NCBI GenBank assembly: GCA_016748015.1
Contig: JAAOMT010000436.1
Span: 1,362,847-1,426,846, forward strand
Reading direction: 5' to 3'
Source: Geosiphon pyriformis uo1
Taxonomy: Eukaryota; Fungi; Glomeromycota
DNA length: 64,000 nt
Both the position numbers and the translations under genes were made by a program. Numbering within the stretch: position 1 is the first letter of the stretch; the number at the start of each line of letters is the position of its first letter. Shown here piece by piece: positions 11,150 to 64,000 of this stretch. The notes under the pieces are model-generated. The model saw only the letters and a list, made by a program, of their open reading frames with translations, did no database searches and was not told the DNA's origin.

Positions 11150-13860
11150 ATTAATGGTCAAACGCAATTTGATCTAATATTTATTTTTATATTTTTATTA
11201 TATTTGAATATAATAATTAATCAAATAATTAATAGTTGAAGTAAATATTTTAAGTTTATTAAATTTTGAATTTAAACCTAATTATGTATTAAGCAAATAA
11301 TTTGTTAAATATTGTTTTAATTTTGGAAATCTTATATTTATAAAATATGACACTTTTATTTTTGTTAATATAATTAAGAAAACAATAACCAAAAAGTTTT
11401 TTTAATAATAAAAATAGTTAAATTAAATATACAAAAAATAGTTTTTTAAATACCACAAATTTAAATAATTTTTTGGTTATTATTATATTAAATTATACTA
11501 GTTTATAATAATTAATTTCAAAAACAATACAACCAAAAAAAAAGTATTTAATTAAAATTATTTTTATTATTATTAAACTTATTAATAAGCAAAACATATT
11601 TACAAATATTATTATAAGTAATTTATTTAAATAAAATAACATAATTTTTAATGTTTTTATATAATATTAATTATTAAATATTTTGTTGCTTTTAAAAATT
11701 TTTGTTATATTTGTAAAAAGTTTTTTTATAAAAAACAAAAATAATAAAGCTTTTTAAGAATTTATTGTTTAATTAAATTGTTATAATTGCTTTTAATTGT
11801 ATTTAATCTAATTTATAATACTTAATTATAATTAATAAAATTTAATATTATTTTTTTGTCTTTTTAATAAGCTAATAATCTTGGTTGGTGGTTTTTTTTA
11901 ATTAAAGTTCTTTTTAAAAAACATATTTGAATTAGTCTTAATATTGTTTTTATCTTTTCTAAAAGTCTCAAAGTTTTTAATAACAGATTAATTAACAAAT
12001 TGGTTTTTTCTGCTTTTATTATTAATATTATTACTACTATTTTACAAATAGCCAAAAAAACCAAAGAGTTAAGAAAACAATAATAGTTATTTGTATTTGC
12101 TATTATTATATTAAATTTCTTTGTAATTCTAAATAAAATCTTAAATAAAATTTCTTTAGTAAGAACCAGTTTTTTTTTTAGTATAAACAATTACAATAAC
12201 AGCACATTTTTCAAAATAAACCAAGATTAATTACTAACTGTATTATTAAATATAGTGTTTTTTAATTAATTATTATTAGTTTTAAAAGCAAATTAACTTA
12301 TTAAATTATTTAATCTTAAAAATTTAATTGATTAAATAGAAAATAAATCAATTTTTTTTCTTCTGTTTTTTTATTCTGTTTTTAGTAATATTTAAAAAAT
12401 AATTTTTAGTTATTAAAGATTCTCTAAATAAGTGGTTTTTGTTTTAATATTTAATATTATTTTTAAAATTAAATTGGTTTTGGTTAATTCTTTGTTTTGT
12501 TTATTGTTTGGTTTTATTAGACTTAAATTAGTTTTTAAAGACAATATTAAGCTATTTTGTGTAAATTTTGCTTCTAAAACTTTTTTGGTTACTGTTATTA
12601 AAATTTTTATTGGTGATTTTTTTTTAATCATACTTAAAATTGCAAAATTTTTTTTGGTAGCTTCTGGTCTTTTTTTTTACATTTGTTGTACTTTGTAATA
12701 TTTTTCTTAATATATCTTTCAATAATATTAAAAAAATTCTTAATGTTTTTAGTATTATTAATTTTGTTACATTAAAATCTATTAATTTATAATAATATAT
12801 TATTGTAGTTTTTAAAGATTTTTTTTTGCTACTGTTAATCTGTATTGGTGAAAAAAAATTATTGTTTTAAGAAATATGTTTAAAATCAAATTGGTCAATT
12901 TTTTTTAGTTATACTGTCTTTAAAATTAATAATATAATTTTTTAAGTTGGTAATTATACTTGTTTTATTTCTTATTTTTTTAATTTTTATTATTATTAAT
13001 GTTTTATTATTGTAATATTTGGCTTTATAAGTTTTTAGATTTTGTTATTGTTAAAATTAGTATTTTATACAAGTGTTATATTTAGTAAAAAACTTTTAAG
13101 TATTATTATTATTATAAATATTAAGATTTAAATTATTTGTTTATTAATCATAAAATATATATTTTTATTTTCTAAGCTGTTTTTTAAGTTTGTAATTGGT
13201 TTTAAGTCTTTTGTGTTATCTTCTATTAATGACAAGTTTTATATTATAATTTATGCTTTTTTAATTGTTTTTAATAATTTTGTCATTAAGTCTAAATTAA
13301 ATTCTTTAAAACTTCAAGTCTTAAATTTGGTAGTATTGGTTAAATTTATTATTAAGTTTATTGGTTTTTTAATTACTTTAATTATTATTTTTCTAAATAA
13401 TAATGCTGGCAAAAATTTTTTAAATAAAAAAAATCTGTTTTTTATAAAATATATTGTTAATAATTTTTCTAATTTTCTAATTAGTGTTTTAAAAAACATT
13501 GTTTGTTTCAAATCTGAAATTGATTTTAATAAAATAAACTATAATAAAATACTAACTGCTAATTTTTTTTTGAGTAAAAACACTATTAAATATATAGCTT
13601 TAATATATATTAAGTTAATTAAGTTGTTTTTTAATGAATTTATTTTTGATTTTATAAATTTAAATAATATTATTAAAAAAATTAATAAACTAAATTTACT
13701 TTTGGCTTCTTTTGTTTTAATATAATATTGTTTTAATTAATTCAAATAACTGGTTACATATAAAAAGTATATAACTTATATCTAGTTTAAATTACTTAAT
13801 TTAATATATTATATTAAGTTATATTTAAATTTTATTTGTTAAACATAATAAAAAAACAAT
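11150..13860. repeat. AT-rich decayed repeat block, probably retroelement-derived, not confidently classified
   Basis: Near-absence of CpG. The ORF-track hits are I/K/N/F/L-rich low-complexity artefacts. Confidence 0.55.
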
Positions 13861-13869
13861 CTTTAATAA

Positions 13870-15626
13870 AATTAAAAAAAACTATTATATACCAAAACAA
13901 ACTTTCAATCAATTTATCAAAGAATTAAGAAGTAGTATTCTTCAATCTATTAGATTTTGTTATTTTGATAGCTTACAAAAAACCATAACACTTGCCTGTA
14001 ATTTTAAATTAGCAGAATAAAAAGCCAATCATATCTAAGCTATTAACTTAGCCATAAATAAAACATCAAATATTAATGCCAAACTTACTCAATTAAGTAA
14101 AAAATTGACTCAAAAAATTGAAGAATTCTTAGCAGAAAACTTTGAAATATATCAATTGTCACAATGTAAAAATAATTCTAGTAATTATTAACAACAGCAG
14201 AATTAATAATAACAACAATCTTAGAAGTCAAATTTTTATAATTGTTATTATTATCAGAAATCTAAATATATTACAAAAGATTACAGAAAAAAACTAGTTA
14301 ATTAAAACCAAGGAAATTAATATTAACCACAACTGAAATATTTCTAAGGCATTAAATTTTAATATTCTTTATTGTAATATTTACAATTATAATACTTACT
14401 TCAATAATTTTCAACTTACTATTAGTCTTCATAAGCAATAATACAGACAATACTTTAGTATTAAGTTCTAATATATAATAATTCCAGACCTTAAACCATT
14501 GACTATAATCAGAAATGGCAAAAGTAAAAATCAAATGCAATCTATTAATGAAACATCCAAATCAGTATATTATAGCAACATATTATTTTAAACAGCACAA
14601 ACAAAATACCCAAATCAGATTTCATATTTTGGTTTTAAAAAAACCTCAAATTTTGGTAATGCTATATCTTTGGAAAAAAAAAACATAGCCACAATTACTA
14701 ATTCTTTTTTTTAGAACATTAATCGAACTTTTAAAACAATTTTCTTTACTATGATTACTAAAAATAATATCCTGGCTGTTATATTTCTATTTAATATTAA
14801 CAGTTTGAACATGACTGATTTTTTTAGCAGAGCTGCTATTAATCAAAATAAATTAATTATAACAATGTATACTAATGCTAAAATAAAATAAATAAACATT
14901 AAATTAATATTTAACAGTAAATCTACAGACAATATAATCATAAAACAATTTATAGATTAACTAAATTACTAAGTAGATCATGCAATCACTACTAAAATAA
15001 TTACCATAGATGAGAATATTAAAACATTAATAAAAAAAATCAACAACTTTCTCTTTAAAATTTATAAAATTAGCATCTTAACTAAAATACTTATCATAAA
15101 AGTCACTTAATATTAAGCTTTTATAAAAAACAATTGGTTAATTAAAGCTTATTTTATATTTGATTGGACCACTTAGGAACTTCAGATTATTTTTAATAAA
15201 TAACATACTAAAGTATCTACTATGTGTAAACACTTTAGAATAACAATTCAAAAACAATTTCTAATTGACTTTAAAGAACTTATATTTTAGCCAATCTTGA
15301 AAACTTATCAAGTTTCTTAGGCTGACAATTTCTAAACAGAACTACTACTACTTTTCACATAGAAAAAAAAGGAAAAAGAATGACAGACAAAGAATCTTAG
15401 GAATTATCATTAATCTACTTAATCCTAAATTAATAAAATCAAATAGATTAATCTCTAAAATTAATTTGTGTTAATTATGAAAAGAAGTTATTCTTTATGA
15501 ATGCTTGTATCAGAAATAATAAAGTATAGTTCATTGTTATTAGATACTATTGTCAATCTTATGTATTAGAATAATTTAAATAACTAAAATAGTAAAGCAA
15601 ATAGGACAAAATTTTATGTCTTGTAT
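13870..15626 (+). mobile_element. Decayed Ty3/Gypsy gag-protease relic
   Basis: Reads NCYYYQKSKYITKDYRKK at ~14240 (eroded CCHC knuckle, CxxCxxxGHxxxxC). At ~14900-15240 it reads IKLIFNSKST...ALIKNNWL-like...FDWTT*ELQ (eroded aspartic protease, IKLILDSGS...ALVGNDWL). Truncated by the LTR at 15627. Confidence 0.75.
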
Positions 15627-16422
15627 TATTATAGATGATTATTTAAAATATTAAAACAAATAACAAATCCATAACTTAGTATTTAATATTTGATAATTGT
15701 TAATAATATCTGAAAATTTTGGAGTTAAAAGTTTTGGTTAAGTTTTTTGTATAATAGACAGAAATTTAATTGATAGTTTTTTCTGTGAATTTTTTTCTTC
15801 AGCATAATAGCTAATTTATTCTGATAGTTGTGTCCTTCTAATAAGCTATCCTTAAATTTCTACCTTTATTTTTGGGTTTTTTACCAAGCTATTCTTAATG
15901 TCAAATACTTAATACTTAATTTTTTTTAATTAATTAGTAAACAACAAAGAAACAAAACAAAAAAAAATAAAGAAATAAAAGAAATTAAAAAAAAATAAGA
16001 AAAAAAATAAGAAATTAGTATTTTGTTAATAGCTGTAATCAAGAATTATTAGTTTAATATAGTTAAGTATTAAATTTTATCAACATAGAATATTAATAGT
16101 ATAAAATTGATTAATATTCCTTATTAAATGATAATAACATAAATTAGATAATAATTATATGTTTATCAATATTAATGTATATCTATTTCAAATTATAGAA
16201 AAATATCTTTTGAAGAAAAAGTATTGAGGTTTTAAACTTTATCAAATTCTGAATACTTTTTTGCTTCTAATATTTTTGCTATATATACATAATTTGTGCT
16301 ATATAAAATTTCTGAAAATCCTGCAATTTTCCAAGAGAATTTTGAAATTTCTCATTTTACTATGCCTATTTCTGATTGGCTATTTTACTTATTATTATAA
16401 TTTCTAATTTTTATGAGTAATA
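15627..16422 (-). mobile_element. Decayed solo LTR without matching TSD (same family as 61538-62464)
   Basis: Termini TATTAT...GTAATA (from TGTTAC...GTAACA). Collinear with the younger LTR, including TGCTATATATACAT and CTGATTGGCTA motifs. Confidence 0.8.
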
Positions 16423-18150
16423 TTAATAAAAAAGCTATTGGGCTGTCTAATATCTCTAATAAAATATGGAAACATTGCAATAAAAACATTTTAAATCTTT
16501 TTTTATGCTTATTTAATTTGTATCTGGTAATAAAATCTGTTTCTAATGTTTAAAAAAAGGCTTAAATGTTAATAATTCTAAAACCTTATAAATAAAAGAG
16601 TATTTTAATAAATACTAAACTAATTGTTCTTATTAAAACCATAAGGAAAATTTTTTTAAAGGTTTTGTCTGATTGAATATTTAAAGTTTATAGTAAGTAT
16701 AACATTTTGCATAATAACAATTTTTCAGTTTTAAAAGATACTTTAACTTAGTTTTCTATTTTTGCTATTAAGTTTGTTGTAGAAAATGTCTTAGAAAAAA
16801 GCAAAAAAATTTGATTAGTGCTCTAAGATATACAAAAAGCCTATAATTTGGTAGACTAATTACATTTGGAGAAAAGTTTAAAAAAAATTAAAATATGTAT
16901 CAAATTTATTAAGTTTTTTGATTATATCTACAATGATCATATAAATAAGGTAATAACAAATTTTGGTTTGTCTAATAGTTATATAGTTTATAATGGACTA
17001 GATCAAAGTAAAAGTTTTTTTATCTCTTCTTTAGAAAATCTTTTATGGCCTTTTTTTGTGCAAAGTGAAAAAATATAACTCAGCTTTTAAGTATTACATG
17101 AATTTCAAATTTGTTATCAGAATTGGCAAAATTGAATTTAATACAGTTTAATCTTTTATTTGGCTGCTGGTGTTTTTATTAATAACACAATTTAAATTGG
17201 CAATTATTATACAACAATACAAAATATATTAAATATTGCTAATAAGTTTTTTGATATTATAGATATCTCAATAAATACAGAAAAAACAATGATTATTTCA
17301 ATAAATCTAAAGTCCAATAATTTTTTTTTGAAAATTAATGGTTTTCTTATTTCAATTACAAAAGCTAGTAAATTTTATTAGTATTTAGGCATTTTTTTGT
17401 CAACTAAGAATCTTTTTGGTTCAAGTATAAAAAAAGCAAACTCAGATGTAAAGTTTTTTTATCAATAATTTTGTATAAAACTATATCAAATAAACAATTT
17501 TTTTATTTAGTCTTAGCAGTTTTACAGCCAATTATTGAAAACAAAATTCAGTTTAGCTTTATTAACAAGAGTACATGTAACAGATAAAACTGTTTGATTA
17601 GTAAAGATTTAAAAACCAAAGCTAATTTACCAAATGACTTCCCTATTAAAACTGTATATCATTCAGCTTTGTACAATTTAAAATCTTTTAATTAGATTTG
17701 GATAAAAAGAAAGATGACTTTAATAATGAATTTTGCCAACAATATTAGTGTTTTAAATCAGTTTTTTCAATATAAATTGTTAGATTTACAAGTATTAAAA
17801 TAAATTTTTTAAAACTTTTTTCAATTTTTTATTAAACTAAAAGTAAATTCAGTAAACAATTTTCTTGTTAATATTACTCTAATTTTTTTAAACATTAAAA
17901 TTTTTCTGACCAATAGTTTGTTCAATGTCTTTTATCTTAAAAATAGAATTCTGTTATAAATATCTTGGGCCAGATAAAATATTTTCAAATTTATAGATCT
18001 CTTAAGTGCTTTGACATAATTTTTGTAAATCAATTTTTAAATAATTATAAAAAGTGTTTTTTTTAGAAGAATTTTTGTTGTTAGAAATAATTAGATTTTA
18101 AAGATCTAATTTCTTTTTAGTTTGTCTATTTATTATAATTCTTATTTTTA
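16423..18150 (+). mobile_element. Decayed LINE ORF2 (RT region) relic, copy D
   Basis: Reads KAIGLSNISNKIWKHC...*KKA*MLIILKPYK*KSILINTKLIVLIKT, an eroded form of KAAGLSGISNELWKHC...WKEAWVSMIPKPYEWEGVLMNTRPIALIET of LINE copies A-C. Confidence 0.9.
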
Positions 18151-19746
18151 TAAGTAATAATATTATATTCAAAATTTTTTTATTTTATAAGTGTGTTTTT
18201 TTAATATATAATAGACAAAAAAAAATTTAATTTATGTAAAATTACAGAAATCTGGTCAACAAAAAGTTTTAAAAAATATTCTAAAATATTTAAACAAATG
18301 TTTAAAACCAAAGCCATAAGACTATTGTCTAAAATATTTATTAAGTCTGTTATTATTAAAAAATTGTATAATAAGTTCGAAAAAAAAGTAAAGATTATGT
18401 TATTAATTACAAATATTTAAGTTTTGTTATTAAAAAAAAACAATTAAAAAATTAAAATTTGTTTTTTTATATATATAATATTGCTTATTAGAATTAAAAA
18501 ATTTTTTTTATTACATTCAGACACTTTTTTATTAAGTATATATTTGCTTAAAATATGATTATATTGTTTATAATTAACATACAAAAATAATATTAAATCA
18601 GCTTAACACAAACTTATGTTTTTAAAAATTAAAATAAAATAAATAACAGCTTTTTTAGAAAAAATAGAATTAAAAAAAATTATAATTTAACAAGTTTGTA
18701 TGTAAATAATTAAATTATATGTTATAATATAAGTTTTATTATATAATACAATAAAATTAAACAGACTATAAACTATAGTGCTAATTAAAAATATATATAA
18801 AAAAGTATAATACTGATCTTTAAAGTCTTATGTTTGTTTGTTATTAATTGTTTTGGCCATATATACAAAGTTTTTTTCTAATATAATTAATTATTTAAAT
18901 ACAATTAAGTTAATAGTATTAAGATTTTTAAATTCAACTAGTGTTTTTTATTATAGGCTAATAAGTTGTATTCTAATTGTTTTTATTTTATTAAATTTAG
19001 CAAACATCAATTATAATACCAATTTAAAAAGATTAATAGAGATTTTTTTAATTATTATTTTCAAATTTGATTTAATATTGACTTATTTTAAATTGGTATT
19101 TATTAAAAATTTTTAAATTTTTAATTTAATTAAGATTAAATTTAAAAATAAACATTAATCAAATTATTTTGTAAAATTTTAAGAAAGTTAAAATTTTCTT
19201 AAATTTATTTACTTAATAAAATAATTTTTTTACAATTTTTAATTTATTATTTAGAGTTTTACCAAAAACAGCTAATATATTAATATTAAAAATAAAGATT
19301 TTATTAAACCAAAAACTTTTTTTTTAATTAACAAAGTATTCTGAATATTTTTAATAAAAAAAATTAAAAAAAACAAATCTAAAATCTTATTATTACTTAT
19401 AGTATTAATAAAAAATATAATATATCTGTTATATTATAAGTTATTATTTGATTTTTATGTATTATTATATTATTTATATTATTAATATTATTATTTTTTA
19501 TATTATTTAAATTAATATATCTAGTTTTTTTAATAATTAAATTATTTGAATTTTTGGTATTTAATATTTTACTAATACTATTTACTTTACTTTTTATTTT
19601 ATTATTCTATAATTTTTTTTTTTTTATTGCTTAATAAGTGAGGTCCAAACACTACCTAGCACTATACATCAAGGAATTGATCTAAACTAGGCGTGAATCA
19701 TGCACTTTCTACACGTGACCAGCCACTCGGGCCAATCAGAACAACA

Positions 19747-22700
19747 CTATGCAGCTATATGAACTGATACTGATTCACCTATACCTGAAAAGAACAAGCA
19801 AGCCTTGCGAAAACCAAAATGAACACCTAAAGCACTAGTAATGCCAAGTAATCTAACCACCCCTGCAGAGAACCTCGAAGCCAAACCATGAACCGAGACA
19901 ACGGCTGAACCATTTAGCAGGATCAGTCCATTCTTCTCCATATACGCACAATGCTTAGCACGAATCGACCAGACATCCTTCCTGAAAGCAAGACCAAGAG
20001 AGCGTACAAACTTGACAATCTCCAAAACAGCAATCTTGGGGTCATGAAAGATGGAAACAGCCTTGCTAAACCATCCATTGAAAACAAAGCCCTTAAAAAG
20101 AGCCATAGACACAGAGAAATCAGAGACACTGGATGACAACAGCTGCAATATACCCGAGGAGGAGTAAGAGGAGCCAGAAAGCACCTTCCAGGACCCTACA
20201 TGAGAATTCAACAACTGGTGCCAAACAGACTCGTCAACCTTGCAAGAGAACACATGATCTGACACCTCCACCTCATTACAATACAAGCACAACACGCTAG
20301 GATAACATTTATCATAGAGGTGCTTCCGAACAGCAACCGGCAGCCGATGGTACAAAGACTTCATAAAATAAGTATGCACACTGGACAAACACCTGCTGGT
20401 GAATCCTGCAGCCATGTGCAAATCAGGATGCCACACCAACGACGAACGGGGCCAATCAACCTCAGAAGACAAGCTGCCAACTAAAACCCCAGAACCAGAA
20501 CCAATCTCCCATCATGCATAACAAATAGAATGATAAATATCACGAACAAAATGCCTCGAATTCCCAGAAACAACATCACCATCAGCCACCAAGAAGTGCT
20601 CACTCAAGCGAGAGGAAAGATACCAATTGGAGAGAGAAGCGGCACCAGCGAACACGTCGGCATATTCGTTTCCCGAAACACCAGAATGACCTTTCACCTT
20701 GCAAAAACTAACTCTTAACTTCTTACTGCAAATTACATTGACAATATGATGACACTCGACCCAACACTGATTACGAAAATCGGGACACACCAGATCTAAC
20801 TCCGACCTACAAGCATCCAACGCCAATTGATTATCTGAGAACAAACAGACAGAGCTTGACGGGGGAACACACTCCAGAGCTAAAGCAACCACCTGCAATT
20901 CCACCAAAGTAGATGACATCAAACCCGAAACCCTTACGCCCAAACCCAAACCAATGTCCTCAAAAAAAACAGCAGCACCAGCTCTACAGCCAACCATGCC
21001 AAGACCACTAAGAGATCCATCTGTATATACCGACAGGCTGCTAGCACTGGTCACCAAGAGATGATCACGAATAGACTTAAATTCACTAGACTTAAGAATG
21101 TTTGAAGGACTACTATCTCCCAAAACTAGAGACTGATTGCGAGAAGATCTCACACTATTGAGAAACAAAACAGAAAGTCTGAACCACTCAGGAACTGGGC
21201 CATGGGGGTCCAATCTCTTCCACCGCTTGAAAGTGTACCAATCATAGACAGCACCATGACAGCCACGAAGTTGATTCACAAAGGCAATACCATACCGCTG
21301 AAGAGAAGAGAGAAACTTGAGAAACCTTGACTCGCCCAGAACCTCAGACATAGGCACTCCATCATGAGACCGAAAGGAACTAACCAAAGAGCCACCCAGA
21401 GAAACATTGCAATCGACAAGAACACGAACCATGCCTGTCAGAAAGTTATTAGAAGCACTGACACAAATACGAACAGAAGAACACAAAGAATGAACAGGGC
21501 ACCAACACAGAACTTGCAAGTCATGAGACCTGTGGGAAAACAAATGACCCAAAATACCACCAGAGTTCGCAAAACTGACAAGGGAAGCAATCTTGCTTTC
21601 AGATTGAACTTGAGAAAATGACTTCAAACCATAAAACGAAGGGTGGTAAACCACATCATTGGGGAAGTCGAGTGGCAAACCAGACTTGAGCTTCAAACCT
21701 TTACGAATCAGAGCATCCTACTTCCCGCACATGCCAACAGGAATAAAACTGAACTGAGTTCTATAGCTGACTATCGGATGCAGAACTGCCGACACCAAAT
21801 ACAAAAACTGCTTATCTGAGACTGCCTTCCTCAACACCAGATTGGTGAAAAAGCGAACGTCCGAATGCGCCTTAGCCAAGCTAGGCCTCGAAAGACCCTC
21901 AGTCGACAAAAAAATGCCCAGATATTGGTGAGATTTGCCCTTTTTGGCAATAGAAATGGGCGAACCACTGATAGAAAGGAAGGGACTACTGACTCTGCTA
22001 TTGATAGGAATGGCTACCATTTTGTCGTTGTTAATAGAAATGTCATTGATAAAAAAAAATTCACTAGCAACATTGAGAATATGTTGAGTAGCCGCCTAAC
22101 TGCTACCAACCCAAATCGTATCATCAACAAAAGCACCAGTGGCAAAAAAAGAAGAAAACCCAGTCTGGGATTCGGAATAACCATTCTTGGAAACAAAGTG
22201 AGAGTTCAATCTATACCCACATACACTCTCCTGTCTTTTGACTTTGCACAAAAGAGGATCATAAAATATGCGCCAGAGAAAAGGAGAGAAAACCTCTCCC
22301 TGGTCCAAACCATTGTGCACATGATAACCACTCGTCAGTCCAAAATCAGTCATGACTCGGTTGGTACGATCTCTATGAATACCACCAAAAAACTGAATAA
22401 ATTTGCTACACATCTTAATCCTAACCAAACTTTTCTCGAGATGCTCCCAGCCAACTGAGTCATACGCTTTTCGCATGTCCTGCAGAACCAGCCATAGCTC
22501 CCTGTTTTTTTCCAAAGCATCTTCGACCACCGAACCAATTGCAAAAATAGGGAACTGGGTTGTCGTACCCTTCAAAACTGAGAAATTAGCCCCTCGAAGC
22601 ACGTCAAAAGTACTGCACGCCAAAGAAATCCTGTCTGAGAGTATCTTGGAAAGAATCTTGCGAGCCGTTTCGATCAAGGCAATAGGACGTGTGTTCATTA

Positions 22701-24435
22701 AAACACCTTCCCACTCATACGGTTTCGGAATCATCGAGACTCATGCTTCCTTCCAAGGGCCGGGCACTGACTCACTAGACAAACAAGAGTTCAAGAGCAC
22801 CAACAACATATCCAAAACTGACCTATCACAATGTTTCCAAAGCTCATTTGAAATACCCGACAAACCAGCCGCTTTACCTTCTGGAAGATCAGAAATCACC
22901 CCAAGGAACTCATCATACCCAATTGAACACATGACACCAGAAAAAGCCTTGTCAAAAACATACTCCAGCGGTTGATATTGGAGGCGCCAATCATCCGATA
23001 CATTATCGACCACCTGACGCTTCCTAGTCCAACCTTCCATGATCGCATCTATCTTGGATTTGACCTGCTCAGGTTCCAAAATCAATTCGTCATCAACCAC
23101 CAAATAATCCAGCACAATCTTACGAAACGGGCGCTCCAACACACTTCTTATTGTATGACCTTTATTTACCTCAAAGCTTTCCATCCTCTTGTCTATCGCA
23201 GATCTGATGCATGCTTCTTTAGCACCCTGAGATTCAATGAACTTGGACTTTCGATAAGATTTCCTGGCACCAAAAAGAGCAGAACAAACACAACCAGATT
23301 CCACACCAGAGTCCACCAGATCCTGAATGACCAGAGCCTTGACACTGTCCAGAGAAGCCCAACACCTCATGAGAGAAGCAAACTCCACAGCACACCTCAC
23401 ACGAAATGCCTTAATAATTTTTGAAACCAGAAGCTCCAACTTGTGAAACCTTGACGACTCTTTGGTAAAGACACCATCAAATTCCTTGAACCACTTTTTC
23501 TTGAACACTTCATCAGCCGAAAGAATCATTATTCTGCAAACAACATCCCATATTGTGTCCAAATCCAAAAACCTCACAGAAACAGCAAACTCATCTGAGA
23601 ACATTGCTGCATTAGCCAATGTGGCACACTTAAAATCGATCCATTTACTCTCATTAGCACTCTTGAAATTAAACTTCCATTTGTCTCTGTTTGCTTGCTT
23701 GCGAAAAGAGCACAATTGCGTATTCAGAAGCCCACTCAGACCCAAAGACACTAAGACAGCTTGATGATCCATGTCAAAGTGCTCATTAACACCTGATACA
23801 TTACGATGTACCATCACATTGACCAGATTTGGAGAGACAAACACATAATCAATCATTCTTTTGACACCCCTAGAATTCTCCCAAGTGGGCATTTTCACAG
23901 CTGGGCTCCCGACCAAAGAGTTAATCAATCCCAAATCAAGGCATTTCTTGAAACTCGCACACTTATAAGAGCCGTCTTCATTAAAATTGCCACTGAGGAT
24001 AACAAAGGAGGATTCATTAACAGCCTTTGTGATGATAGAGTTGATTTCACCTGCCTGAAAGAACCGGACTGCCGAAGAAGCGCCAGCATACAGTCCCAAA
24101 ATTGACACAGAGAGCCTGTTCTTGAAAAGTAACTTGATAGACAACAACCGACCCGGGACCTCAGACACCTTGCACACATGTCTCGCCAAAGAAGAGTCCA
24201 TAACCACCACCACACCAGCACTCAGATACCCAGAATCCAAACCAGTAGTAAACACCCGAACTCCATCAAACTTGTTAATGATCCAGGGCTGAACCTTACC
24301 TTTTAACTTAGTTTCAGTAAAAATTGAAATTGAATTGTCCATGTCCTTATGCCAACGAATGACATCACCCTGCTTTGCAGGGTTGTTCATTCCTCTAACA
24401 TTGCATGTAGCAACTTTCCATACTAATTCACTCAT
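19747..24435 (-). pseudogene. LINE A ORF2 (APE endonuclease, reverse transcriptase, RNase H, C-terminal zinc finger), 4 in-frame stops, no frameshift
   Basis: APE: ATCNVRG, ETKL, GNFN, IDY, DH. RT: RPIAL, DMRKAYDSV, GLDQGEVFSP, FVDD, YLG. RNase H: YTDGS, KVKGHSG..GNEYAD. Zinc finger: CLYC..E..DHVFSC. The fragments are all in one frame. Confidence 0.93.
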
Positions 24436-47000: not shown

Positions 47001-47337
47001 AGAAATTTTGTTAGATAAAATCTTAAAAAATTTTTTTTTGTAGTTTTAATTAAAACAATAGATTGTGTGTTTATTAAGATACTTTTTTATTTATGTAACT
47101 TAAAAATTATAGAAACTTATATTTTTTTTTAAGATTAAAAGATAAATTTATACATTAAACAAACATTCAAAAGATTCAAAAACATATTTAAAATTGATTT
47201 ATTATAATATTTTCACAACTTATTTATTATTCCAAAAAAACTAATAGCTTTTTTATTAGACAAATCTATTATTATACTTAATATTTTATCAAAATTAATA
47301 AAATACATAATACCAGAAAAAACATTATTGACTATAT
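44020..47337 (-). mobile_element. Heavily decayed LINE copy E, 3' portion (3' UTR, ZnF, RNaseH, RT)
   Basis: 44085-44155 aligns ungapped to the copy A 3' UTR (19679-19749). RT motifs are recognisable at 46100-47330. The element continues at 60973 after the Gypsy insertion. Confidence 0.85.
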
Positions 47338-53900: not shown

Positions 53901-56900
53901 ACTCTCTTCTAAATTTTCCAGGTTGGAGCTTTTGGTTGCCAAGTTATTGAAAGTGCTGAGATGGGATGATACTTTGGGCTTTGATCATCTGGCTAACACT
54001 TGGCTTAAAGTTGACTCTTCTGAAGCTTTCAAAGTTTTTGGTATAATCGGGGATGGTTTGGGTTCTGCTGACTTGATAAGTCATCTTTCAAAGGTTAGGA
54101 AGCAATATAGAAAGTCCAAATATTGTGAATCTGAGGTGGCCAAAAGATCTGCTATCAGAGATACAATTGATAAGCATATAGAAAAGTTTGAAATAGACAA
54201 AGGTGGGATGATTCGGAGCATCTTAGAGCGGCCCTTTCACAAAGTCATTCTGGACCATTTGGTTGTTGATGATTCTCTTATTTTGGAACCTAACAAAGTG
54301 AAGCTCAAAGTTGATAACATCATGGTTAATTGGACCAGGAAGTGGAATGCTCTTCCTGCCTTGTCTGGTCTCTGGGCACAACAATATGCCCCTTTGGCTT
54401 ATGTTAATGATAGTGCCTTCAGTCTGGTTATGTGTAATATTACCATGTGTGAGATGTCTTTGGTTATAAGCAATATTCCTGATGGCAAAGCTGCTGGTTT
54501 GTCTGGTATTACCAATGAACTTTGGAAACACACTGGCTATTTGGTTTTGGAGTGTTTGTTGTCTTTGCTGAACTCTTGTTTGCGTTTTAGTAATGTTCTG
54601 GTCCATTGGAAAGAGGCCTGGGTGTCCATGATTCCTAAGCCTTATGGTTGGGATGGTGTCTTGTCGAATACACGACCTATTGCATTGATTGAGACAGCCA
54701 GGAAGATTCTGTCAAAAGTTCTCTTAGACATGATCTCTCTTGCTTGTAGTAGGTTTGATGTCCTCCATGGTAACAACTTTTCTGTCCTCAAAGGCACTTC
54801 CACTCAGTTACCAATTTCAGCTGTGGGTTCAATTGTAGAGGATGCTTTGAAAAAAAGCCGTGAACTTTGGCTAGTTCTTCAAAACATGCACAAAGTGTAT
54901 GACTCTGTTGGTTGGCCTCATTTAGAAGCTAGTTTACGCTGTATTAAAATGTACAGCAAGTTTATCAAGTTTTTTGGCAACATTCACAAAAGTCACTTCA
55001 ACAGAGTCATGATAGATTTTGGTTTTTCTGATGGATACAAAGTTTTTGATGGTTTGGATCAGGGCAAAGTTTTCTCATCTCTTCTATGGAGAATTTTTTA
55101 TGACCCTTTGTTATGTGAAGTTGTGAGACAAGATCATTTGTGTGGTTATCGGATCAATTTGAACTTTGTGTTGAAGACTGGAAGGATTGAGACTAATGGG
55201 GGTATGACCTCTTTTTTTGTGGCTGGTGCCTTTGTTGATAACACTATTTGGGTGGGAAATGGGCAAGCCTCTATGCAGCACATTCTTAATGTGGCCAGTG
55301 AGTTTTTTCTCATCAATGATATTAACATAAACAACGAAAAGACGATTGCCATTCCTATCAACAAAAGAGTGGGAGTTTCTGTTTTATTCATCAACAGCCA
55401 GGTTATTGCTGTTGCCAATCCTGGTCTAAGTCATTAATATTTGGGTATTTTTTTGTCCACTGATGGTTTGTCTAAGCTGAGTCTTGCCAAAGCCAATTCA
55501 GATATTAAGTTTTTCTCAAATATGGTTTTCCAGAAGGCTGTCTCTGATAAACAATTCTCTTATCTGGTTTCAGCTGTTTTGCAACCCATAGTCAGTTATC
55601 AAACGCAGTTTAGTTTTGTTTCCAAAGCTGTTTGTCTAAAATAAGACATTCTAATTAGGAGGGGTCTTAAGTCGAAAACCAATTTGCCAAGAGACTTTCC
55701 CAATGAGGCATTGCATCACCCCTCTCTTTATGGGCTGAAATTTTTTGAACAGTTGCAAGCTGAATGCAAGACAGCTTCTGTTGTGCAGTTTGTAAATTCT
55801 TCTGGAATTCTTGGCCAACTGTTCGAATATCAAATTATAGATTTGCAGGTTTTGTGCTGGGCTCTGTTGAATTCTCTGCAATATCCTGTTAAGCTAAGAG
55901 TAAACACTTCAAACAATTTTCTAGTGGGTGTGGTTTGTATATTTCTTGACAACAAGCTGTCTTTGGATAACAGGCTTCCCTGTGCCTTTCACTCTCCTGG
56001 CCATTTCCCAATGTCATTAGTGTTGGATGATCCTTTGTATTTCAATGTGGTTCGCTCCTTAAAAATTGCTGGTGTAGCATATGGTGACCAACTTCTGGAC
56101 AAAAATGGTTCTATTGTTAGTTGGCGTATGTTTTGCCGATGAAAAAGACTTGGTTCTAGAGGCCTTGTGCCTTTATGGTTTTTGAAGGCCTCTACTTACT
56201 TGGGTAATTGTTTGCATGCTCCCCCTTCTGTGAGTTTAGCTTCTGTCTGTGCTAGTGTTTTGAATTCAACATCTTTTGCCGACATTCGTGAGGAGATTCA
56301 TAGATTGTGGGCTGATGAGATTGATGTTTATACTGATGGTTCTCTTAGAAGTTTGGGTATGTTTCAGGTGGCGTGTGGTGCTGCCATTTATTTTCCTGGC
56401 TTGAACAAAGGTTTAGAAGTGGAGGTACATGGTGTGCTGTCTTTGACCCTAGCTGAATTAAAGACTATTGCCCTGGCTCTAGAGTGCATTTCCGCCTCTG
56501 TTTCAGTGGCTTTGCACATGGATAGTTAAGTGGCTATCAATGCATGTGTGGCTGAATTGGGTCTGTTACAGCTGGATTGTCGCAATAGTTGCTGGATAGA
56601 AAGGCACCATGTGGTTAATTTGATTAAATCTAAAGATCTGACTGTTCGCTGGATCAAGGTCAAAGGTCATGCTGGCATTGCTGGTAATGTTTTGGCTGAC
56701 ATTCTTACTGAACAGGCTGCGCATTCTGGGGTCTCTCTCTCTGTCAGGATTAATTGTAGATATGTGGTTGCTAATGACAGGCCAGTTTCCAGTAATGCCT
56801 GCCATTTTGTACATGACATTTTTCGTTCTATTTGCAAGTTTTAGTGGGAGGTGGGTCCTGGCCAAGGGGTTGTGTCTTGTTTGTTTGGTCTGGTTGTCGA

Positions 56901-57746
56901 TTGGAATAGTACCACTCTAGTTTGGCACCCTGACTCTCATATGCTCTCTGGGAGTATGTGTCAAGCCACTGCTGCTCTTTGTATGTACTTCATAAAAGCT
57001 GTTCATTTTAGGTTGCCTGTAGCTGTTCGAAAGAGGTTGTATAATAAGAATTACCCTGGTGTGTCTTGTCTGTTTTGTGGTGATGTGGAATTTCCCGATC
57101 ATGGTTTTACTTGTATTAAGGATGCTTCTGTGTGGTCAGATATTTTGGGTGATTTTGGTGGTTTGTGGAGGACTTTGATGGGTCCTAATCTACTGTTGCC
57201 GTCTTTTGTACTGCGAGATCTTTCTCTGAGGGTGTCTGATATTGGGTTGTATTCGGTTTTTTGTAAGAGATTTGTTCTTAAGAGTTGGATGGATGAGACC
57301 ACTGCTTCTCTTGGTGACAAGAAGAAAGTGGCCGTTATGGTGGTGGATTTTATCCGTCATTTGGCTAAGAGTCATAGAACAAACCTATGGCTCTTTAGGA
57401 CTAAGTTCAGGTCTGACATGGAGAGAAGTGGTTTGATTAATGATGATGTTGTTGTGGCCGGTGCTCTTGGTGTGGATGCTCTGCCTCTCTCAGCTGGCAT
57501 GGTCCATCTTATTGGTGTGCTAGATTCTCTTAATGTCGGTTTTGGTTTTAGGGATAGGTTCTTGTTTTTGTCTGGTGCTGTTTATAGGGTTAGTGTTTTG
57601 ATAAATGTGTAGTGTTGCCTTGATTGGCTTAAGTGGCCAGTCACATGTAGCAAATGCATGAACCATGTTTAGTTGGCTACTTTTCTTTGTAATTTATTCT
57701 AGACTTTGATTGGGCTGCACTCGTTAATAAATAAATAAATAAAAAA
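50924..57746 (+). mobile_element. Full-length LINE copy C (divergent subfamily), inactivated; ORF1 51067-52930, ORF2 52927-57612
   Basis: Same architecture as A and B. Tail (TAAA)n + A-run. TSD ATTCTTGTA (50915-50923) / ATTTTTGTA (57747-57755) lies inside the Gypsy RT. The ORF2 start is mutated ATGA->ATAA. Confidence 0.95.
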
Positions 57747-58809
57747 ATTTTTGTATAGACAATTTTTATTAGCCATTGAAAAATAGCTGGTGTATTGGTT
57801 AAGTCAAAAGACATAACATTAAATTTGAAGTTTTTTTTGTTTTGTAGTAAATGTTGTTTTTTTTTTGTTATTTGAATTTATGACTATTTATTAATAATTA
57901 CTATCTAAGTTCAATATTAAAAATTAGTTTTTTCTGTTAAAAGCATCAAATAATTTTTAAATATATGAAATTAGATAGCTGTTATCTTGAATAATATTGT
58001 TAAGCTTTTTATAGTTTACACAAAAATGAATTTTTCTATTTTTTTTCTAATAAGTATTACTAATAATAATTATAAGCTTATAAATAATTAGATTAAACTA
58101 TTGTTTAACATTTAGTTGATCTTCTGATAAATAATTTTATGGATAACAAATGGTATTTTGTATGTTTTCTGATTAATTAACATTGTATTTTCAGTTTTTA
58201 TTTAATTCTAAATAATATCAGTTTATTCAAATTTATTCTTATTTACAAAGATATTTGCAAAGTTGTTAAACAACAATTTAATCTGCATATATTAAAGTAA
58301 ATTCAAATTTTCCAAGTTTATTTGTTCTAATTGTTTTAATTATAGTAAATAATATTTTTGTTTTTTATAAATGATTTATAATATAATATTTACATATCCA
58401 AAAAGTTATAAGAAGTTTAAAACAATAATTGGTAGTTAATTTTTTACTTTAGTATTTAAGTATCTAATAATCATTCTAATTAATAATTTTATTAAATTTT
58501 TTGTTGTATTATAAATTGAAATTTTAATGTGTTTATAGTTCTTAATTGGTAAATATAGATTAGTAATACCAATTTTTTTTAATTTATAAATAATTAGTTT
58601 TATTTCAAAAATCTGGTATTGATTTTTACTATTTTTACTATATATTGATTATATAATACAACAAAAATTAATTAATTAATGAAAATAATTTTTTTTTAAT
58701 TAATTGTTTCTTTTTTTATTATATTTACTAATATGTTATTTTTTTTAGTTAATCTAAATATATTGATTTTTTTTGCTGTTATTTTTAACTTTTTTTTTGT
58801 TTATATTAA

Positions 58810-59115
58810 TATTAACAAAGCTATTTTAATTAGAAATAAAAATATTGTCTGTGTTATTTTTTTAATTTATTTTGTAGTATTGTACTAATATTCTCATATA
58901 TTTTGCATTAATTATTTTTTTTTGGATACTGATTTCTTTTTTTGTTAAATTAAAACTAAATATTAATTAAACTATTATTGTTGCTAAAATTTTTAATGGT
59001 ATTTTTAAATTTATCTAAGTGTATAAATTAGGTTTTAATATGATAATATTTTTTTTAAATATTTAAAATTAAATTCTATATCTATATTATATACATATTT
59101 TGACATAATAATTTT
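58810..59115 (-). pseudogene. dUTPase domain relic within the Gypsy pol, between protease and RT
   Basis: Eroded motifs in correct order and spacing: DIEFNF (<-DAGFDL, 59065-59082), LIFSFNLTKK (<-LASRSSLAKK), KKIINAKY (<-GGIIDAGY, 58898-58921) and ITQTIF (<-IAQAIF, 58840-58857). Restoring them needs almost only A->G and T->C reversions. Confidence 0.65.
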
Positions 59116-61815
59116 ATTATTATTATTAAACTACTTAAGTTTTTGTTTCATTAAAAAATTTAAAAGCACAATATATAAGTCGAAATTATTACTGCTATTA
59201 TTATTATAAACAATATTAGAAATATTGTTATTATTATTATTAGAATTAAATTGGAATTGATTTTTAATTTTAATTTCTATATATATCTACTAATTGGTTT
59301 TTTTAGAAGGATTAAATAGATTATATAAGATAGTAAATTGTAAACAGTATCACAATTATTAAAATATTTAAAATAACATAAAATTAAATAATAGTTGTAT
59401 AGTTTAATATTAAAGTTAATTAATCTTTGCTCCTGTTTTTTTTATAAGAATAAGTTTTTAATAACATTTTTAAAATACTTCTGAGTTATTAGTAAAAAGA
59501 TTATTTATTTCTTTGGCTGCTATAAAAGTATTCTTAATAACATGTATTTTCTTAATAATTGTATTTTTTTATTTTACTATAGTTATTTTCCAGATTTCAT
59601 TTTTATTATAGAGATATAAGTCTAGTTAATTAATTGTTTAATTATAAATAGTGGTAAATAAAGTTTTTTTGTATGTTTAATTATTAATTAATATAATATA
59701 CTAACAAAATTTATTGTATGTTTTTTTTATTAGAAATGTTATTCTATAGTCTTTTATTGAACAAGATTTTTTTATAAACAAAACAATAGTATATTATCTT
59801 ATTTGTCTTATTATTTTAGATGTTTAAATTATTTTAATATATATAAATAACATTAATATTTTGTAATAATTGATTATATTTTGTTATTTCTTATACAAAT
59901 ACCTATTAATAATAATTTTTTATTATAATTAACACAAATTAACTTGGATAATTAATAAAGTTAATTTTATTAATTTAGTAAAACATATATAAAAACCAAG
60001 ACTTATGGTTTTTTTTCAGCTTTTTTTTTGTTTTTTTCTTTTATATTAATATTAGTAATAATTTATTATAATTTTTTTCTATTCAAAAAACTTAGTAAAC
60101 TTCTTAAGTAAATTTTTTTTAATTGATTAATAATTGTTTATTAGTAGTAATTTTAAAGTGTTTACAAATAACAAATACTTAATTATACTAACACTAAACA
60201 TTAGTTAAAGCTTTTGAATATTTTAATTAAATATAGTATTAGTTTTAAATAGCCAATTATTACTAATAAGTACTTAATATTATATAACTTTTATGACAAA
60301 AACTTTAATAAATATGATGATACTATTAACATTAAAAAAAAGTTATTAATTTTGCCAATTGAAATTTTTGTTGCTTTATTAACAATAATAATATATGTAT
60401 TAATAGTTTTATTAATTTAATAATTTAATTAATCTATAAGTTTATTTTACATTTTGTTTTAGTATTTTTTATCAAATAATCTTTAATGTTGTAATTTTAA
60501 TATTTTTCTTAATTAATTTTAGTAAATACAACAAACAAAATAAAAAAGATAAACAAAAATTAAGAAATTAGTATTTTATTAATAACTATAATTAAGAACT
60601 ATTATTTTAATATAACAAAGAATAGTAAATAATTTAATTAATAAATAATAATAACATAAATTAAATAGTAATTGATAATTTTATTAATAGATAGATAATT
60701 TTATTTTAAATAATAGCAAATTAACTTTTAAAGTAAATAAAAAGAAAAAAAACTAAATCTTAGATTTTTGTCTTTTTTTTCTTTTATTTTTATTGTTATA
60801 TATACATAAATTTTATTATACAAAAAATCTTTGAATTTTTTTTATAAAAATTTCTGGAATTCTGAAATTTTGTAATTTTTATTAAGAGTATTAATTTTTT
60901 TTTATTAAATCTATTTCTAATTAGTTATTTATTTACTTATTATTTTTTCTATTATTATATAAATAATAACATAAACTAATAAGAAATATTATTAATACTA
61001 TACTTTAAGAATAGTTTTTAATATCTTTTACTTTTTTGTTTAATTTTTTATAATTATATTTATTTTAAACTTGACCAATTTAGGTTTTAATATCAGATTT
61101 TTACTAACAATCAAATAATCCAAAACTATTTTGTAAAAAAAATGCTTTAAAATACTTCTAATAGTATAATTCTTATTTATTTTAAAATTTTCTATTCTTT
61201 TATTAATAATTAATTTGATTTATATTTTTTTAGCTTACTAAAACTTTATTATCTTTAAAACTTGATAAAACTTTTTTGTCTTAAATAAAACAGACTAAAT
61301 AATATTAAAACCAATGTTTAAATTAGCAAAATTTACAATATTAAAAGTATTATTAGCATTAAAAAAAAACCAAAGCTTTAAGAAAAAATTAAAATTATTA
61401 CTTAATATCAAATAAAAAATCTTAATTATTTTAGAGATCAAAATTTTCAACTTGTAAAAATAGAATAAAAACTTAGTAAAACACTGTTATAATTTTTAAA
61501 TTAAGTTTTAGAAAATATTTTATTTGTTAAAAAGCAGTGTTACAGATGATTCTTTGGAGTGTTGAGTAAATAACCAACCTGTAACTTGGTGTTCAAGGCA
61601 ATTGGTGACAATGATAATCTGAAGATATTTTATCTGAAGGTTTTTCCAATTGAGTTCTTTGTATAATAGACAGAGATTCAATGGTAACAGTTTATCAGTA
61701 GTTTTCTGGCACCATAGTTTTGCCAATTGCTTGCTCAGCTTGATGGTTGATAATTCTCCTAGTATGATATCTTCCATAAGTATATATCAATGTGGTTTCC
61801 TAACGTCAGTTCTTT

Positions 61816-61927
61816 CATAAGTCCTCCAAGAGTAAGTGTTGTTTAAGCAAGTTTATTTCTCCATAAGTCCTCCAAGAGTAAGTATTTTTCAGTAAGCTTT
61901 ATTCCTCCATAAGTCCTCTAAGAGTAA
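61816..61927 (+). repeat. 3 x 46-bp tandem repeat inside the solo LTR (core CATAAGTCCTCCAAGAGTAA)
   Basis: Cores start at 61816, 61862 and 61908. Confidence 0.85.
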
Positions 61928-62217
61928 ATTCTTTAATCAAGTTAGTAGACAACAAAGAAAATAAAGAAAGATAAAAGAGAAAATAAAAAATAAGCCAAGG
62001 CGATTTGCAAGTTAATATTCCATCAATAGCCATAATCAAGAGCTATTGTTCCAGTATGGTTAAGTATCAGTTACCATCAACATGAAGTGTTGATAGTGGA
62101 GAATAAATTTGATATAGTGAATAATTATTTATTTGAGGATTGTAGTAACTAAGCTAAGAATTCTTGGTGTTGATTCTTTTTTTTCTGCTTTTAACACTAC
62201 TGCTATATATACATATT

Positions 62218-62388
62218 TGAGATTCCTCAATTCCTCAATTCCTTGCAACAGGAATTTTGGAATTTTTGAAATTCTGTAATTCCTAATAAGAGAAATCCTG
62301 GAATTTTGGAATCTTGTGATTCTTTGTCAGGGAATCCTGAAATTCTTGGAATCCTGCAATTCCTCTGAGAAGAATCCTAGAATTCCAC
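62218..62388. repeat. Array of 8-9-bp GAATTCCTG-like units between the CCAAT and TATA boxes (putative U3 enhancer)
   Basis: Repeated GAATT(C/T)(C/T)TG / GAATCCTG / CAATTCCT units. Confidence 0.65.
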
Positions 62389-64000
62389 ATTTACTATGTC
62401 TACATCTGATTGGCTAATATCTACTGACTAATAATACTATATTTCCTATATTTTATAAGTAACAGCAGGCTATTTTTCGAATAATGTCTTATATTATGTT
62501 TATATTTGAAAACTTTTTTATAATAACAAAATTATTAGCAAATATAACAGTAATAATAAGTATATACATCTTAAATTGGCCTTATTTTAACTTATTAGCA
62601 TTTTTAAAATTAAATTTTCAATAATTTTTATTAGCTTAAGTGTAAAAAAAATTTAAATTTGTATTTAAAAGATTATTTAAACCAATAAAAACATAAATAA
62701 CACAATAATTAATATTAAAAAATTTATATACTTTTAAAAATTTTTTATTAGCTATTACATTAATAGAATTCAACAATACAAAAACAAAATCAATTGTCTT
62801 TTTAACATTTTTAAAGTTTTTTAAATAGAAATTTTAGCAAATAAACTACTAATTAAAAAATTAATTAAACTAAAATTCAAATATTTCTTAAAATTAGTAT
62901 TGTATTTAACACTATTTTTATTAAAATAATTTTTTAAAACAATAAAAGTACTATTATTAAATGCTTTAATTATAAAAAAATTAACAATAAGTGCCTAATT
63001 TAAATATTTTTTTAAAAATATACTTATATATAAATTTATTACAAAAACTAACTATTTGTTTTTAAACAATAAATAAATTATAAGAAATTTACTAAGAATC
63101 TTTAAGATTTTTAAAATATAATTAGCCAATTATTTATTTATAATTAATATAATATTAGTATACAAATATTTCAAATTTAAATCAAAAATAAACACTTATA
63201 TATTAATAAACTTATTTATAATCTAAGACTTAATATTAAAATATTATTTAAACAAAAAAACTTAAACTTGTCTAAAATAGTTTTTATTAAACTTTTTAAG
63301 ATTATTATATTGGCTTTTAAGTTATCAATTTTGATAGTTAGAATCTTTAATTTGCTAAAAAAAATTCCAAAACACATTAATAATATTGAACAATATACAA
63401 AAATTTGGCAATAGCTTAATAATAATCATATTAAGTTCTGATTTAATAATTAACATAAATGTCTTTTTGACATATATTAATAATATTAGAAAACAAAAAA
63501 TGTTTAGTTTGTAAGAAATTTTAACAATATAATCTGACAAAAATTTTAGAAAATGTTTCAAAATATTTTGATAAAAGACCAAAATCAAAGTTACAGAACT
63601 ATTAGTAAAAGTATTAAGTAAAAATTTTATTAAAAAAACACTAATAAACAATATAAACAGAAAACTTTTCAAAATACTACTTACCACAAAAACCTAAATT
63701 ATACAACTAAAAAAGACCAGATAAAGTCTGTTTTTTTGCATAAATACATATAAGATGTTTTCTATTAGATTTAAAAAAAATTTTTAAATACTAATTAGAT
63801 AATTTTAAATTTGGTTTACAAATACTAAAAATATAATTGTATTTTTTATATTTAATATACTTTAAAGTTAATAATTCAATTCAAACCAGATTAATATCTT
63901 TAAAAATTAGAATTAAATAAATAATAGTATTTTTAATAACAATAAAATTAAAACACATAATAGTATAATATGCTTATGTATATAAAACAAAGTTGTATAA

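Follow-up and report, generated by a model that had tools for sequence, protein, structure and literature searches.

Canonical RIP, as described in Neurospora with its RID and DIM-2 branches (10.1101/115501, PMC12543289), erodes repeats by C:G>T:A transitions, and a 2025 survey of approximately 1,200 genomes reported RIP-like signatures as unique to ascomycetes (PMC12543289). In Zymoseptoria tritici, a Dim2-dependent mitotic process produces C>T changes in transposable elements (TEs), with more than 98% of the changes at CpA and with CpG spared (PMC8016269), and a RIP-like hypermutation of repeats at TpCpG has been described outside the Ascomycota, in Pucciniomycotina (PMC3318451). Two further systems concern methylation: TEs of Rhizophagus irregularis are silenced by 5mCpG (PMC8647823), and those of Phycomyces carry CG and CHH 5mC in the presence of DIM2 plus DNMT1 (PMC11258239). 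RIP signatures were reported as undetected in Gigaspora margarita or Mucoromycotina, and RIP as undetected in arbuscular mycorrhizal fungi (AMF; PMC8647823).

We analysed a 64,000-nucleotide stretch (the window) of Geosiphon pyriformis, a member of Glomeromycotina and relative of AMF, which agrees with the host placement offered in an earlier note on this DNA. The sequence-level analysis covered 264 kb of the Geosiphon genome. A literature search returned no report of a C>T process for Geosiphon or its group; the Geosiphon genome papers (PMID 33592192, 39054868) were outside its reach and may mention one.

Decayed transposons in the AT deserts

Gene blocks, LINEs and AT-rich deserts share the window. 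The single-copy block at 1100..11100 (TOP1 exons, GNAT and a FUT-like gene; GC ~0.35, CpG observed/expected (o/e) 0.75-1.1) and the block at 27500..31700, which holds a bZIP gene (28731-29813; nearest named homologues from Ambispora) and an alpha/beta hydrolase gene (30911-31594), served as unmutated controls. The first desert (11170..19550, GC 0.10-0.22) has a sharp left edge at ~11170 and holds the nested remains of LINEs, of Gypsy pieces and of an element sharing the LINE tail, with ~50% of its length decodable. The second (39000..50930, GC 0.10-0.17) is 56% decodable, and the third (57750..64000, GC ~0.13) comprises the remainder of a Gypsy relic, more LINE relics and a younger LTR fragment (~61950-62470, GC 0.30). 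LINE A (19551..26400, minus strand; RT and RNase H by Pfam; GC 0.44, CpG o/e 0.55) is the least eroded copy here and its ORFs are already broken; LINE B (32014..38950, minus strand; GC 0.38, CpG o/e 0.24) is intermediate in erosion. LINE C (50935..57748, plus strand, GC 0.41), which has a sister copy just beyond the window (LINE D, 65850-72587), is nested inside a relic Gypsy-type LTR element (47572..60970, minus strand) with LTRs at ~47572-48130 and 60440-60970, both of GC ~0.11. The LINEs regarded as intact are under erosion too, at a CpG o/e of 0.24-0.55.

The deserts were decoded by alignment in purine/pyrimidine space to elements of higher GC within the surrounding region of 194 kb, which bore out the suggestion that they are decodable transposons: decayed LINE and Gypsy relics make up 50-74% of four large deserts, and the best matches summed to 3329 GC>AT versus 572 AT>GC changes over 14.85 kb. 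A relic LINE 3' tail (13720..13844, plus strand) compared with LINE A over 75 nt shows 27 GC>AT changes, one reverse change and no transversions, and a relic LINE RT region (16420..17940, plus strand, GC 0.20) has lost ~50% of invariant G/C. Relic E, a decayed LINE extending from the 3' tail to the RT (44080..47331, minus strand, GC 0.14), has lost 64% of invariant G/C and has dozens of matches genome-wide at 67-79% identity. The earlier note's count of 25 of 34 G/C positions changed by transition, in an ungapped 71-nt alignment of LINE A (19679-19749) with relic E (44085-44155), was reproduced without deviation: C>T accounts for 15 positions and G>A for 10, 9 G/C are kept, T>A occurs once and A/T>G/C never. 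The alignment runs far past these 71 nt. At columns invariant among intact LINEs, transitions have removed 50-84% of the G/C of relics, with AT>GC changes (2-5%) and A/T-site transversions (2-10%) at about the same level as in intact copies.

Genes near the deserts keep their composition, as had been claimed, with GC 0.35 and CpG o/e 0.85 in gene blocks versus 0.146 and 0.08 in deserts. The proposed comparison of repeats with single-copy neutral DNA showed that GC and CpG are both retained in introns, in intergenic DNA and in a duplicate that has become a pseudogene. C:G>T:A transitions concentrate in repeats, and the postulated repeat-restricted, directional process is upheld by the relics, by LTR pairs and by outgroup polarity. 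Genome-wide AT-biased mutation combined with old age, or an assembly artefact, is a highly improbable source of the deserts. AMF genomes are AT-rich (25-29% GC in most listed species, PMC9453076) and nesting shows the relics to be older than the intact copies, but the relics are not rich in transversions, the neutral single-copy sequences keep their GC and CpG, and a ts/tv of ~50 in LTR pairs versus ~1.5-2.4 in gene duplicates already contradicts this reading. Also against an artefact, a single read contig, which may be the assembly's own source, crosses a gene/desert junction without substitutions, and deserts are present in independent Ambispora assemblies.

Rate, clock and sequence context in young copies

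The two LTRs of one element are identical at insertion. Four LTR pairs in the window flanks, three of them with TG..CA ends and 4-bp target duplications, differ by 52/1, 53/1, 79/1 and 76/2 transitions/transversions (260 versus 5 in total), and LINE C and LINE D differ by 501 transitions and 17 transversions in 6737 nt. Outgroup polarity assigns ancestral G/C to 85-93% of non-CpG differences (70% in the weakest pair). Reverse-transcriptase error combined with purifying selection was ruled out as the transition source, since LTR pairs show the same pattern and non-CpG differences are spread evenly across codon positions. Per site, C>T is ~50-130 times the transversion rate. Passive 5mC deamination usually gives a roughly 10- to 50-fold excess over transversions, so the larger excess in these copies calls for something further.

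Accumulation of C>T is clock-like. Loads are equal between members of same-age pairs (chi2 1.38, df 5, p=0.93), changes are neither clustered nor over-dispersed, their dispersion being that of the null, and runs tests over 14 copies, lightly hit copies included, detected no strand runs (mean z -0.4). In a few relics the runs z approached -2, inconsistently between copies. The relic Gypsy LTR pair has 6 transversions in 420 nt, or 1.4% (0.5-3.1%); simple arithmetic on the young-pair ratios predicts ~1.7-3%, so the transversion age of this pair fits one steady clock.

Pooled per-copy rates were 0.28 for CpG, 0.068 for CpA, 0.085 for CpC and 0.067 for CpT; CpG thus decays ~4 times faster, and most changes are non-CpG. 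The 5' neighbour at non-CpG sites affects the rate in the order T (0.105), C (0.073), A (0.055) and G (0.043; p=4e-13), a bias of only ~2.4-fold that CpG sites lack, and its restriction to non-CpG sites suggests two processes. The CpA preference of canonical RIP was rejected, with CpA≈CpT≲CpC in young copies and no preference in relics (0.69/0.65/0.72), as was a preference between CHG and CHH. TpCpG was likewise rejected as a favoured target (TCG 0.245 versus ACG 0.307, CCG 0.287 and GCG 0.313). The Geosiphon process resembles that of Pucciniomycotina: both hypermutate repeats, lie outside Ascomycota and involve a 5'-T. It differs in that TpCpG (0.245) is not above ApCpG/GpCpG (0.31) and the 5'-T bias lies at non-CpG sites, where most changes fall. 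Deserts on several contigs show TpC o/e of ~0.7 and GpC o/e of ~1.8-2.0. Their CpA/TpG o/e of ~1.05 leaves RIP indices near zero, and the composite RIP index (~-0.3 to +0.6) is uninformative.

These context effects could reflect cytosine deamination by an APOBEC-like or other enzyme, or else UV lesions at dipyrimidines that escape repair; either would make the TpC-biased non-CpG part in TE chromatin, atop ordinary CpG decay. The ranking of 5' neighbours (T>C>A>G) at non-CpG sites, its absence at CpG and the TpC and GpC ratios of the deserts favour such a source. We nevertheless consider it unlikely: the bias is only ~2.4-fold, the changes show no clusters and no strand bias, Ambispora deserts lack the TpC depletion, and APOBEC_N had no match in the genome, itself a weak negative. 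Five hits fell in the dCMP/cytidine-deaminase family.

Spared duplicates and candidate enzymes

The L011/L012 gene duplicate, inverted, 1.17 kb long, ~92% identical and 32 kb apart, has kept its CpG and differs by 56 transitions and 38 transversions. It is one of two CpG-retaining duplicates, one of them a host gene, which have ts/tv of 1.5-2.4 and 1.3 and show no C>T excess, as far as two controls, neither tandem, can indicate. In addition, one end of a MULE, beside a carbamoyl-phosphate-synthase-like gene, has GC 0.35 versus ~0.1 in the other copy and in its own distal part; this end is protected next to the promoter.

All ten PF00145 hits in the genome fall in DNMT1, two DIM-2, two DNMT2-like genes and a stand-alone MTase with a broken copy; no RID-like gene was recognised among the ten, as classed by motifs and nearest hits. 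Each spliced DNMT model was searched, and its reading frame checked, one exon at a time. The DIM-2 paralogues G9A89_017607 and G9A89_014285 have intact catalytic motifs; the DIM-2 identification rests on an RFD-DUF7893-BAH-MTase architecture, a PDB 9baq/9bap hit and FCGGG/PCQ/ENV motifs, and the DIM-2 locus L013 is spliced in RNA data of two studies with exon phases open. The stand-alone C5-MTase L011 is unclassified (ENV motif; nearest hits bacterial/DNMT1). Genome profile matches also include three Pre-SET hits and weak chromo-shadow hits, candidate traces of an H3K9 methyltransferase and of HP1.

The process shares with canonical RIP the C:G>T:A erosion of repeats, sharply bounded AT-rich blocks and few near-identical repeats, and is unlike it in lacking CpA preference, a strand-coordinated or episodic load and a recognisable RID, and in sparing gene duplicates. 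It is not canonical RIP. Homology-triggered RIP acting in many weak rounds during cryptic sexual cycles, possibly through a DIM-2/DIM-5/HP1 branch as in Neurospora, would sum to an apparently clock-like load. The near-pure C:G>T:A change, confinement to repeats, sharp edges, lack of any nearly identical pair among the LINE copies scored (86-92% at best), ability of DIM-2 to drive RIP without RID (10.1101/115501) and presence of L011 are in keeping with it. We judge it improbable, given the untouched L011/L012 and second CpG-retaining duplicates, the lack of CpA bias, of a recognised RID-like gene and of strand runs (lightly hit copies included), and the escape of one MULE end beside a promoter despite homology. 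The earlier note had proposed a homology- or heterochromatin-directed system; the heterochromatin route is plausible with two DIM-2-like genes and DNMT1, and the homology or RIP-type trigger is disfavoured by unmutated duplicates, absent CpA preference, absent strand coordination or clustering, and clock-like loads.

Probable mutagenesis in transposon heterochromatin

The explanation that we consider probable is that C>T changes arise continuously in the heterochromatin of transposons through a mutagenic process linked to 5mC, with chromatin state rather than DNA-DNA homology picking the target. Once a transposon enters repeat heterochromatin, cytosines of both strands would turn to thymine continuously and independently of one another, in every context, with CpG fastest (~4-fold) and a 5'-T/C bias at non-CpG sites, such that elements would be inactivated early and then drift to ~10% GC. 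CpG loss would follow from DNMT1-maintained 5mCpG and non-CpG loss from DIM-2-type CH methylation guided by H3K9me/HP1, with deamination, spontaneous or methyltransferase-assisted, presumably poorly repaired. We infer this link between the enzymes and the mutagenesis, for which the Zymoseptoria process and the Phycomyces methylation offer precedents.

A purely passive account, in which dense all-context methylation coincides with replication of unusually low error or with a lack of T:G repair, and has no mutagenic function, differs from this chromatin-directed mutagenesis only in enzyme-promoted deamination and selective maintenance. It has a minority share of our confidence: the Poisson-like, strand-neutral, CpG-first kinetics agree with it, and the genome has a single UDG-superfamily hit, a result compatible with either loss or retention of TDG/MUG, but non-CpG rates 50-130 times those of transversions would need very high CH methylation, and CHH methylation in Phycomyces is ~1% genome-wide (PMC11258239). 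More speculatively, Archaeosporales may have evolved a dedicated genome defence that works by mutation and needs neither RID nor homology. Its agent would be a second DIM-2 paralogue, fast-evolving and specific to the lineage, or a partner deaminase, actively converting heterochromatic C>T in nuclei of the vegetative phase; outside Dikarya this would be the equivalent of RIP, invisible to RIP indices based on CpA.

Chromatin-directed mutagenesis of this type resembles the Zymoseptoria process in its TE restriction, near-pure C>T, lack of evident need for sex and DIM-2 homologues; it differs in that CpG is fastest, CpA, CpC and CpT are similar, a 5'-T bias is present, the end state is ~10% GC and the host belongs to Glomeromycotina. 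DNMT1 and DIM-2 family enzymes and CpG loss in TEs are common to Geosiphon and the Rhizophagus and Phycomyces systems; the papers on those two systems report methylation, whereas Geosiphon shows saturating all-context mutation. Ambispora has similar deserts, possibly also of TE origin, with a different sequence context that lacks the TpC depletion; these were undecodable against Geosiphon TEs because they are too divergent from them. The DIM-2 duplication is common to Geosiphon and Ambispora, and DIM-2 is also found in Rhizophagus, Funneliformis, Gigaspora and Diversispora. A small, TE-poor sample of R. irregularis, a weak control, contained no such deserts, so that DIM-2 presence alone appears insufficient to explain the trait; the D. 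epigaea loci are likewise TE-poor and a weak control.

The saturating, TE-confined, all-context C>T of Geosiphon, apparently shared by Ambispora, broadens the known scope of transposon control by mutation and makes clear why indices built on CpA overlook such mutagenesis. It bears on whether sex is needed for such mutagenesis, an open question for AMF, and the one DIM-2 found in other AMF versus two in Archaeosporales provides a natural comparison. LTR and Kimura ages and repeat annotations of these genomes will carry a heavy bias unless they are based on transversions only.

Composition and decoding of the AT-rich deserts

Sequence in the window falls into three compositional states: gene blocks (GC 0.35, CpG observed/expected 0.85), recognisable LINEs (GC 0.38-0.44, CpG 0.24-0.55) and AT-rich deserts (GC 0.146) with observed/expected ratios of 0.08 for CpG, ~0.7 for TpC, 1.8 for GpC and ~1.05 for CpA/TpG. 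The gene-block values bear out an earlier note on this DNA, which described nearby genes as normal in GC and CpG. The desert dinucleotide signature recurs next to genes on six other contigs. Alignment in purine/pyrimidine space, with the window and 130 kb of flank as reference, allowed 50-74% of the large deserts to be read as LINE and Gypsy relics, consistent with the proposal that deserts are decodable transposons. Decoded relics carry 3329 GC>AT versus 572 AT>GC changes. Transitions have removed 50-84% of the G/C in LINE relics at columns that do not vary between intact LINE copies, and other change classes stand at about the levels of intact copies. The earlier count for LINE A (19551..26400, minus strand) against relic E, a decayed LINE (44080..47331, minus strand), proved exact: positions 19679-19749 and 44085-44155 differ by 15 C>T and 10 G>A, both on one strand as claimed, and one T>A, with nine G/C kept and no reverse change. 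Relic E has dozens of genome-wide matches at 67-79% identity, and most LINE A relatives contain stop codons.

A ~2.3-kb element forms a tandem pair at L025:161-4421 (window-relative 94161-98421; window-relative numbers smaller than 1 or larger than 64000 lie in the flanks, L018-L030), with a relic at 11890-13160. It shares the LINE 3' tail, its copies differ by 335 transitions and 29 transversions, and its ORF pieces gave no Pfam match.

Spectrum and tempo of mutation

Both LTRs of an element are identical when inserted. Four pairs, three with TG..CA ends and 4-bp target duplications, gave transition/transversion counts of 52/1, 53/1, 79/1 and 76/2. LINE C (50935..57748, plus strand; closest scored relatives 86-92% identical) and its sister LINE D (65850-72587) differ by 501 transitions and 17 transversions over 6737 nt. 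Since outgroups assign ancestral G/C to 85-93% of non-CpG differences (70% in the weakest pair) and changes fall about equally on the codon positions, these are post-insertion C>T changes. Non-CpG loss per cytosine relative to transversions per site is ~48x for LINEs C and D; for the LTR pairs, with only five transversions, it is ~130x (range roughly 56-400x). Pooled per-copy rates were 0.28 for CpG, 0.068 for CpA, 0.085 for CpC and 0.067 for CpT. The non-CpG rate depends on the 5' neighbour (T 0.105, C 0.073, A 0.055, G 0.043; p=4e-13), an order repeated in relics; CpG sites in the pooled copies show no such effect, which suggests two superimposed processes, CpG and non-CpG. A deaminase or UV source could underlie the TpC component, as the highest rate follows T; the genome has no match to the APOBEC_N profile, and we consider this source improbable.

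Mutation loads are equal among same-age copies (chi2 1.38, df 5), mutations cluster no more than in shuffled controls, and C>T and G>A are intermixed at random along copies. A nested insertion series, the relic Gypsy element enclosing LINE C (47572-60970), provides an internal clock. Its LTRs (GC ~0.11 each) differ by six transversions in 420 nt (1.4%, 0.5-3.1%), which fits the 1.7-3% expected if young-pair ratios continue, so that one steady clock suffices; many weak episodes may have acted instead.

Spared duplicates and chromatin position

The earlier note envisaged homology- or heterochromatin-directed mutagenesis. A 1.17-kb inverted duplication of a stand-alone C5 methyltransferase gene, its copies 32 kb apart and one broken (L011:4242-5587, plus; L012:4430-5680, minus), shows 56 transitions and 38 transversions with CpG kept. 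A second CpG-retaining duplicate of unassigned gene identity, between TE blocks (window-relative -13702 to -13150 and 102651-103199), has a transition/transversion ratio of 1.3. In these two cases homology by itself therefore set off no mutation, and that part of the proposal is not supported. The Geosiphon process resembles canonical RIP in its outcome but lacks three of the defining features tested. We consider multi-round homology-triggered RIP improbable.

The chromatin part is supported by a MULE at ~89860-92100 (L023:5860-8100), beside a gene that we take, from its ORF text, to be a putative carbamoyl-phosphate-synthase-like gene. The gene-side end has GC 0.35 and retains CpG, and GC falls to ~0.1 within 1 kb; over 455 nt of its other copy, which is eroded throughout, directional transitions number 109 versus 6, with 6 transversions. 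With one end spared and the other copy eroded, chromatin position is pointed to as governing MULE erosion. Protection near genes is not universal, the desert edge at 11170 being abrupt beside the TOP1 upstream region.

Methyltransferases, relatives and known systems

As the earlier note presumed, the host lies outside Dikarya: G. pyriformis belongs to Archaeosporales and is not an ascomycete. The genome search which that note advised for DNMT1 and DIM-2 recovered both. PF00145 matches comprise one DNMT1 (L014), two DIM-2-like genes (L013, L015), two DNMT2-like genes (L016, L017; two are also reported for Phycomyces), and the stand-alone methyltransferase with its broken copy. L013 and L015 share an RFD-DUF7893-BAH-MTase architecture. 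The N-terminal exon of L013 matches PDB 9baq/9bap, presumably Neurospora DIM-2; runs from two studies support its GT..AG joints, and all 10 exons checked one by one are open and in phase. Rhizophagus, Funneliformis, Gigaspora and Diversispora each yielded one DIM-2 gene, Geosiphon and both Ambispora species two each. In a quick tree the paralogues form two Archaeosporales clades (support 96/84), the second long-branched with intact catalytic motifs, and DIM-2 appears to have duplicated in the Archaeosporales ancestor (L013, L015, P0033, P0186, P0034, P0036, P0188, P0196). The stand-alone L011 gene contains introns and an ENV motif and has bacterial-like nearest clusters, its L012 duplicate being frameshifted; it may be RID-like or horizontally acquired. 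Pre-SET matches are present, as are weak chromo-shadow matches and a single UDG-family match.

The window's bZIP gene has its nearest named homologues in Ambispora. CpG-free blocks of GC 0.06-0.2 lie beside normal genes within or at the end of four of five Ambispora loci, the fifth having only a short one at its end; a TE origin could not be decoded for them. Upstream of the orthologous bZIP gene of Ambispora leptoticha is a 2.6-kb block of GC 0.06-0.12 (L032:2000-4600). Ambispora deserts (5-6 kb per species) are depleted in CpC and not in TpC, so mutation context may differ from that in Geosiphon. The R. irregularis locus, which is TE-poor, has no such blocks, and strain differences there have transition/transversion ratios of ~0.8-2.7.

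The mechanism that we favour as probable is one in which TE heterochromatin continuously loses cytosines by a deamination-type process; DNMT1 would account for the CpG share and DIM-2-type CH methylation for the remainder. A purely passive form of this loss overlaps with the favoured model and is rather unlikely. The closest known system is Dim2-dependent mitotic mutagenesis in Zymoseptoria (PMC8016269), from which Geosiphon differs in sequence context; nor does its pattern match the TpCpG pattern of Pucciniomycotina (PMC3318451).

The survey of Badet and Croll 2025 (PMC12543289) confines RIP-like signatures to ascomycetes; neither Geosiphon nor Ambispora is named in its main text or in the part of its supplement covered. 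Dallaire et al. (PMC8647823) describe RIP as undetected in Gigaspora or Mucoromycotina, and an AMF-wide TE study that included Geosiphon does not mention RIP. In the literature covered, the erosion is apparently unpublished. Erosion in Geosiphon is real and strong, and it is best read as methylation/heterochromatin-linked mutagenesis of repeats, not as RIP proper.
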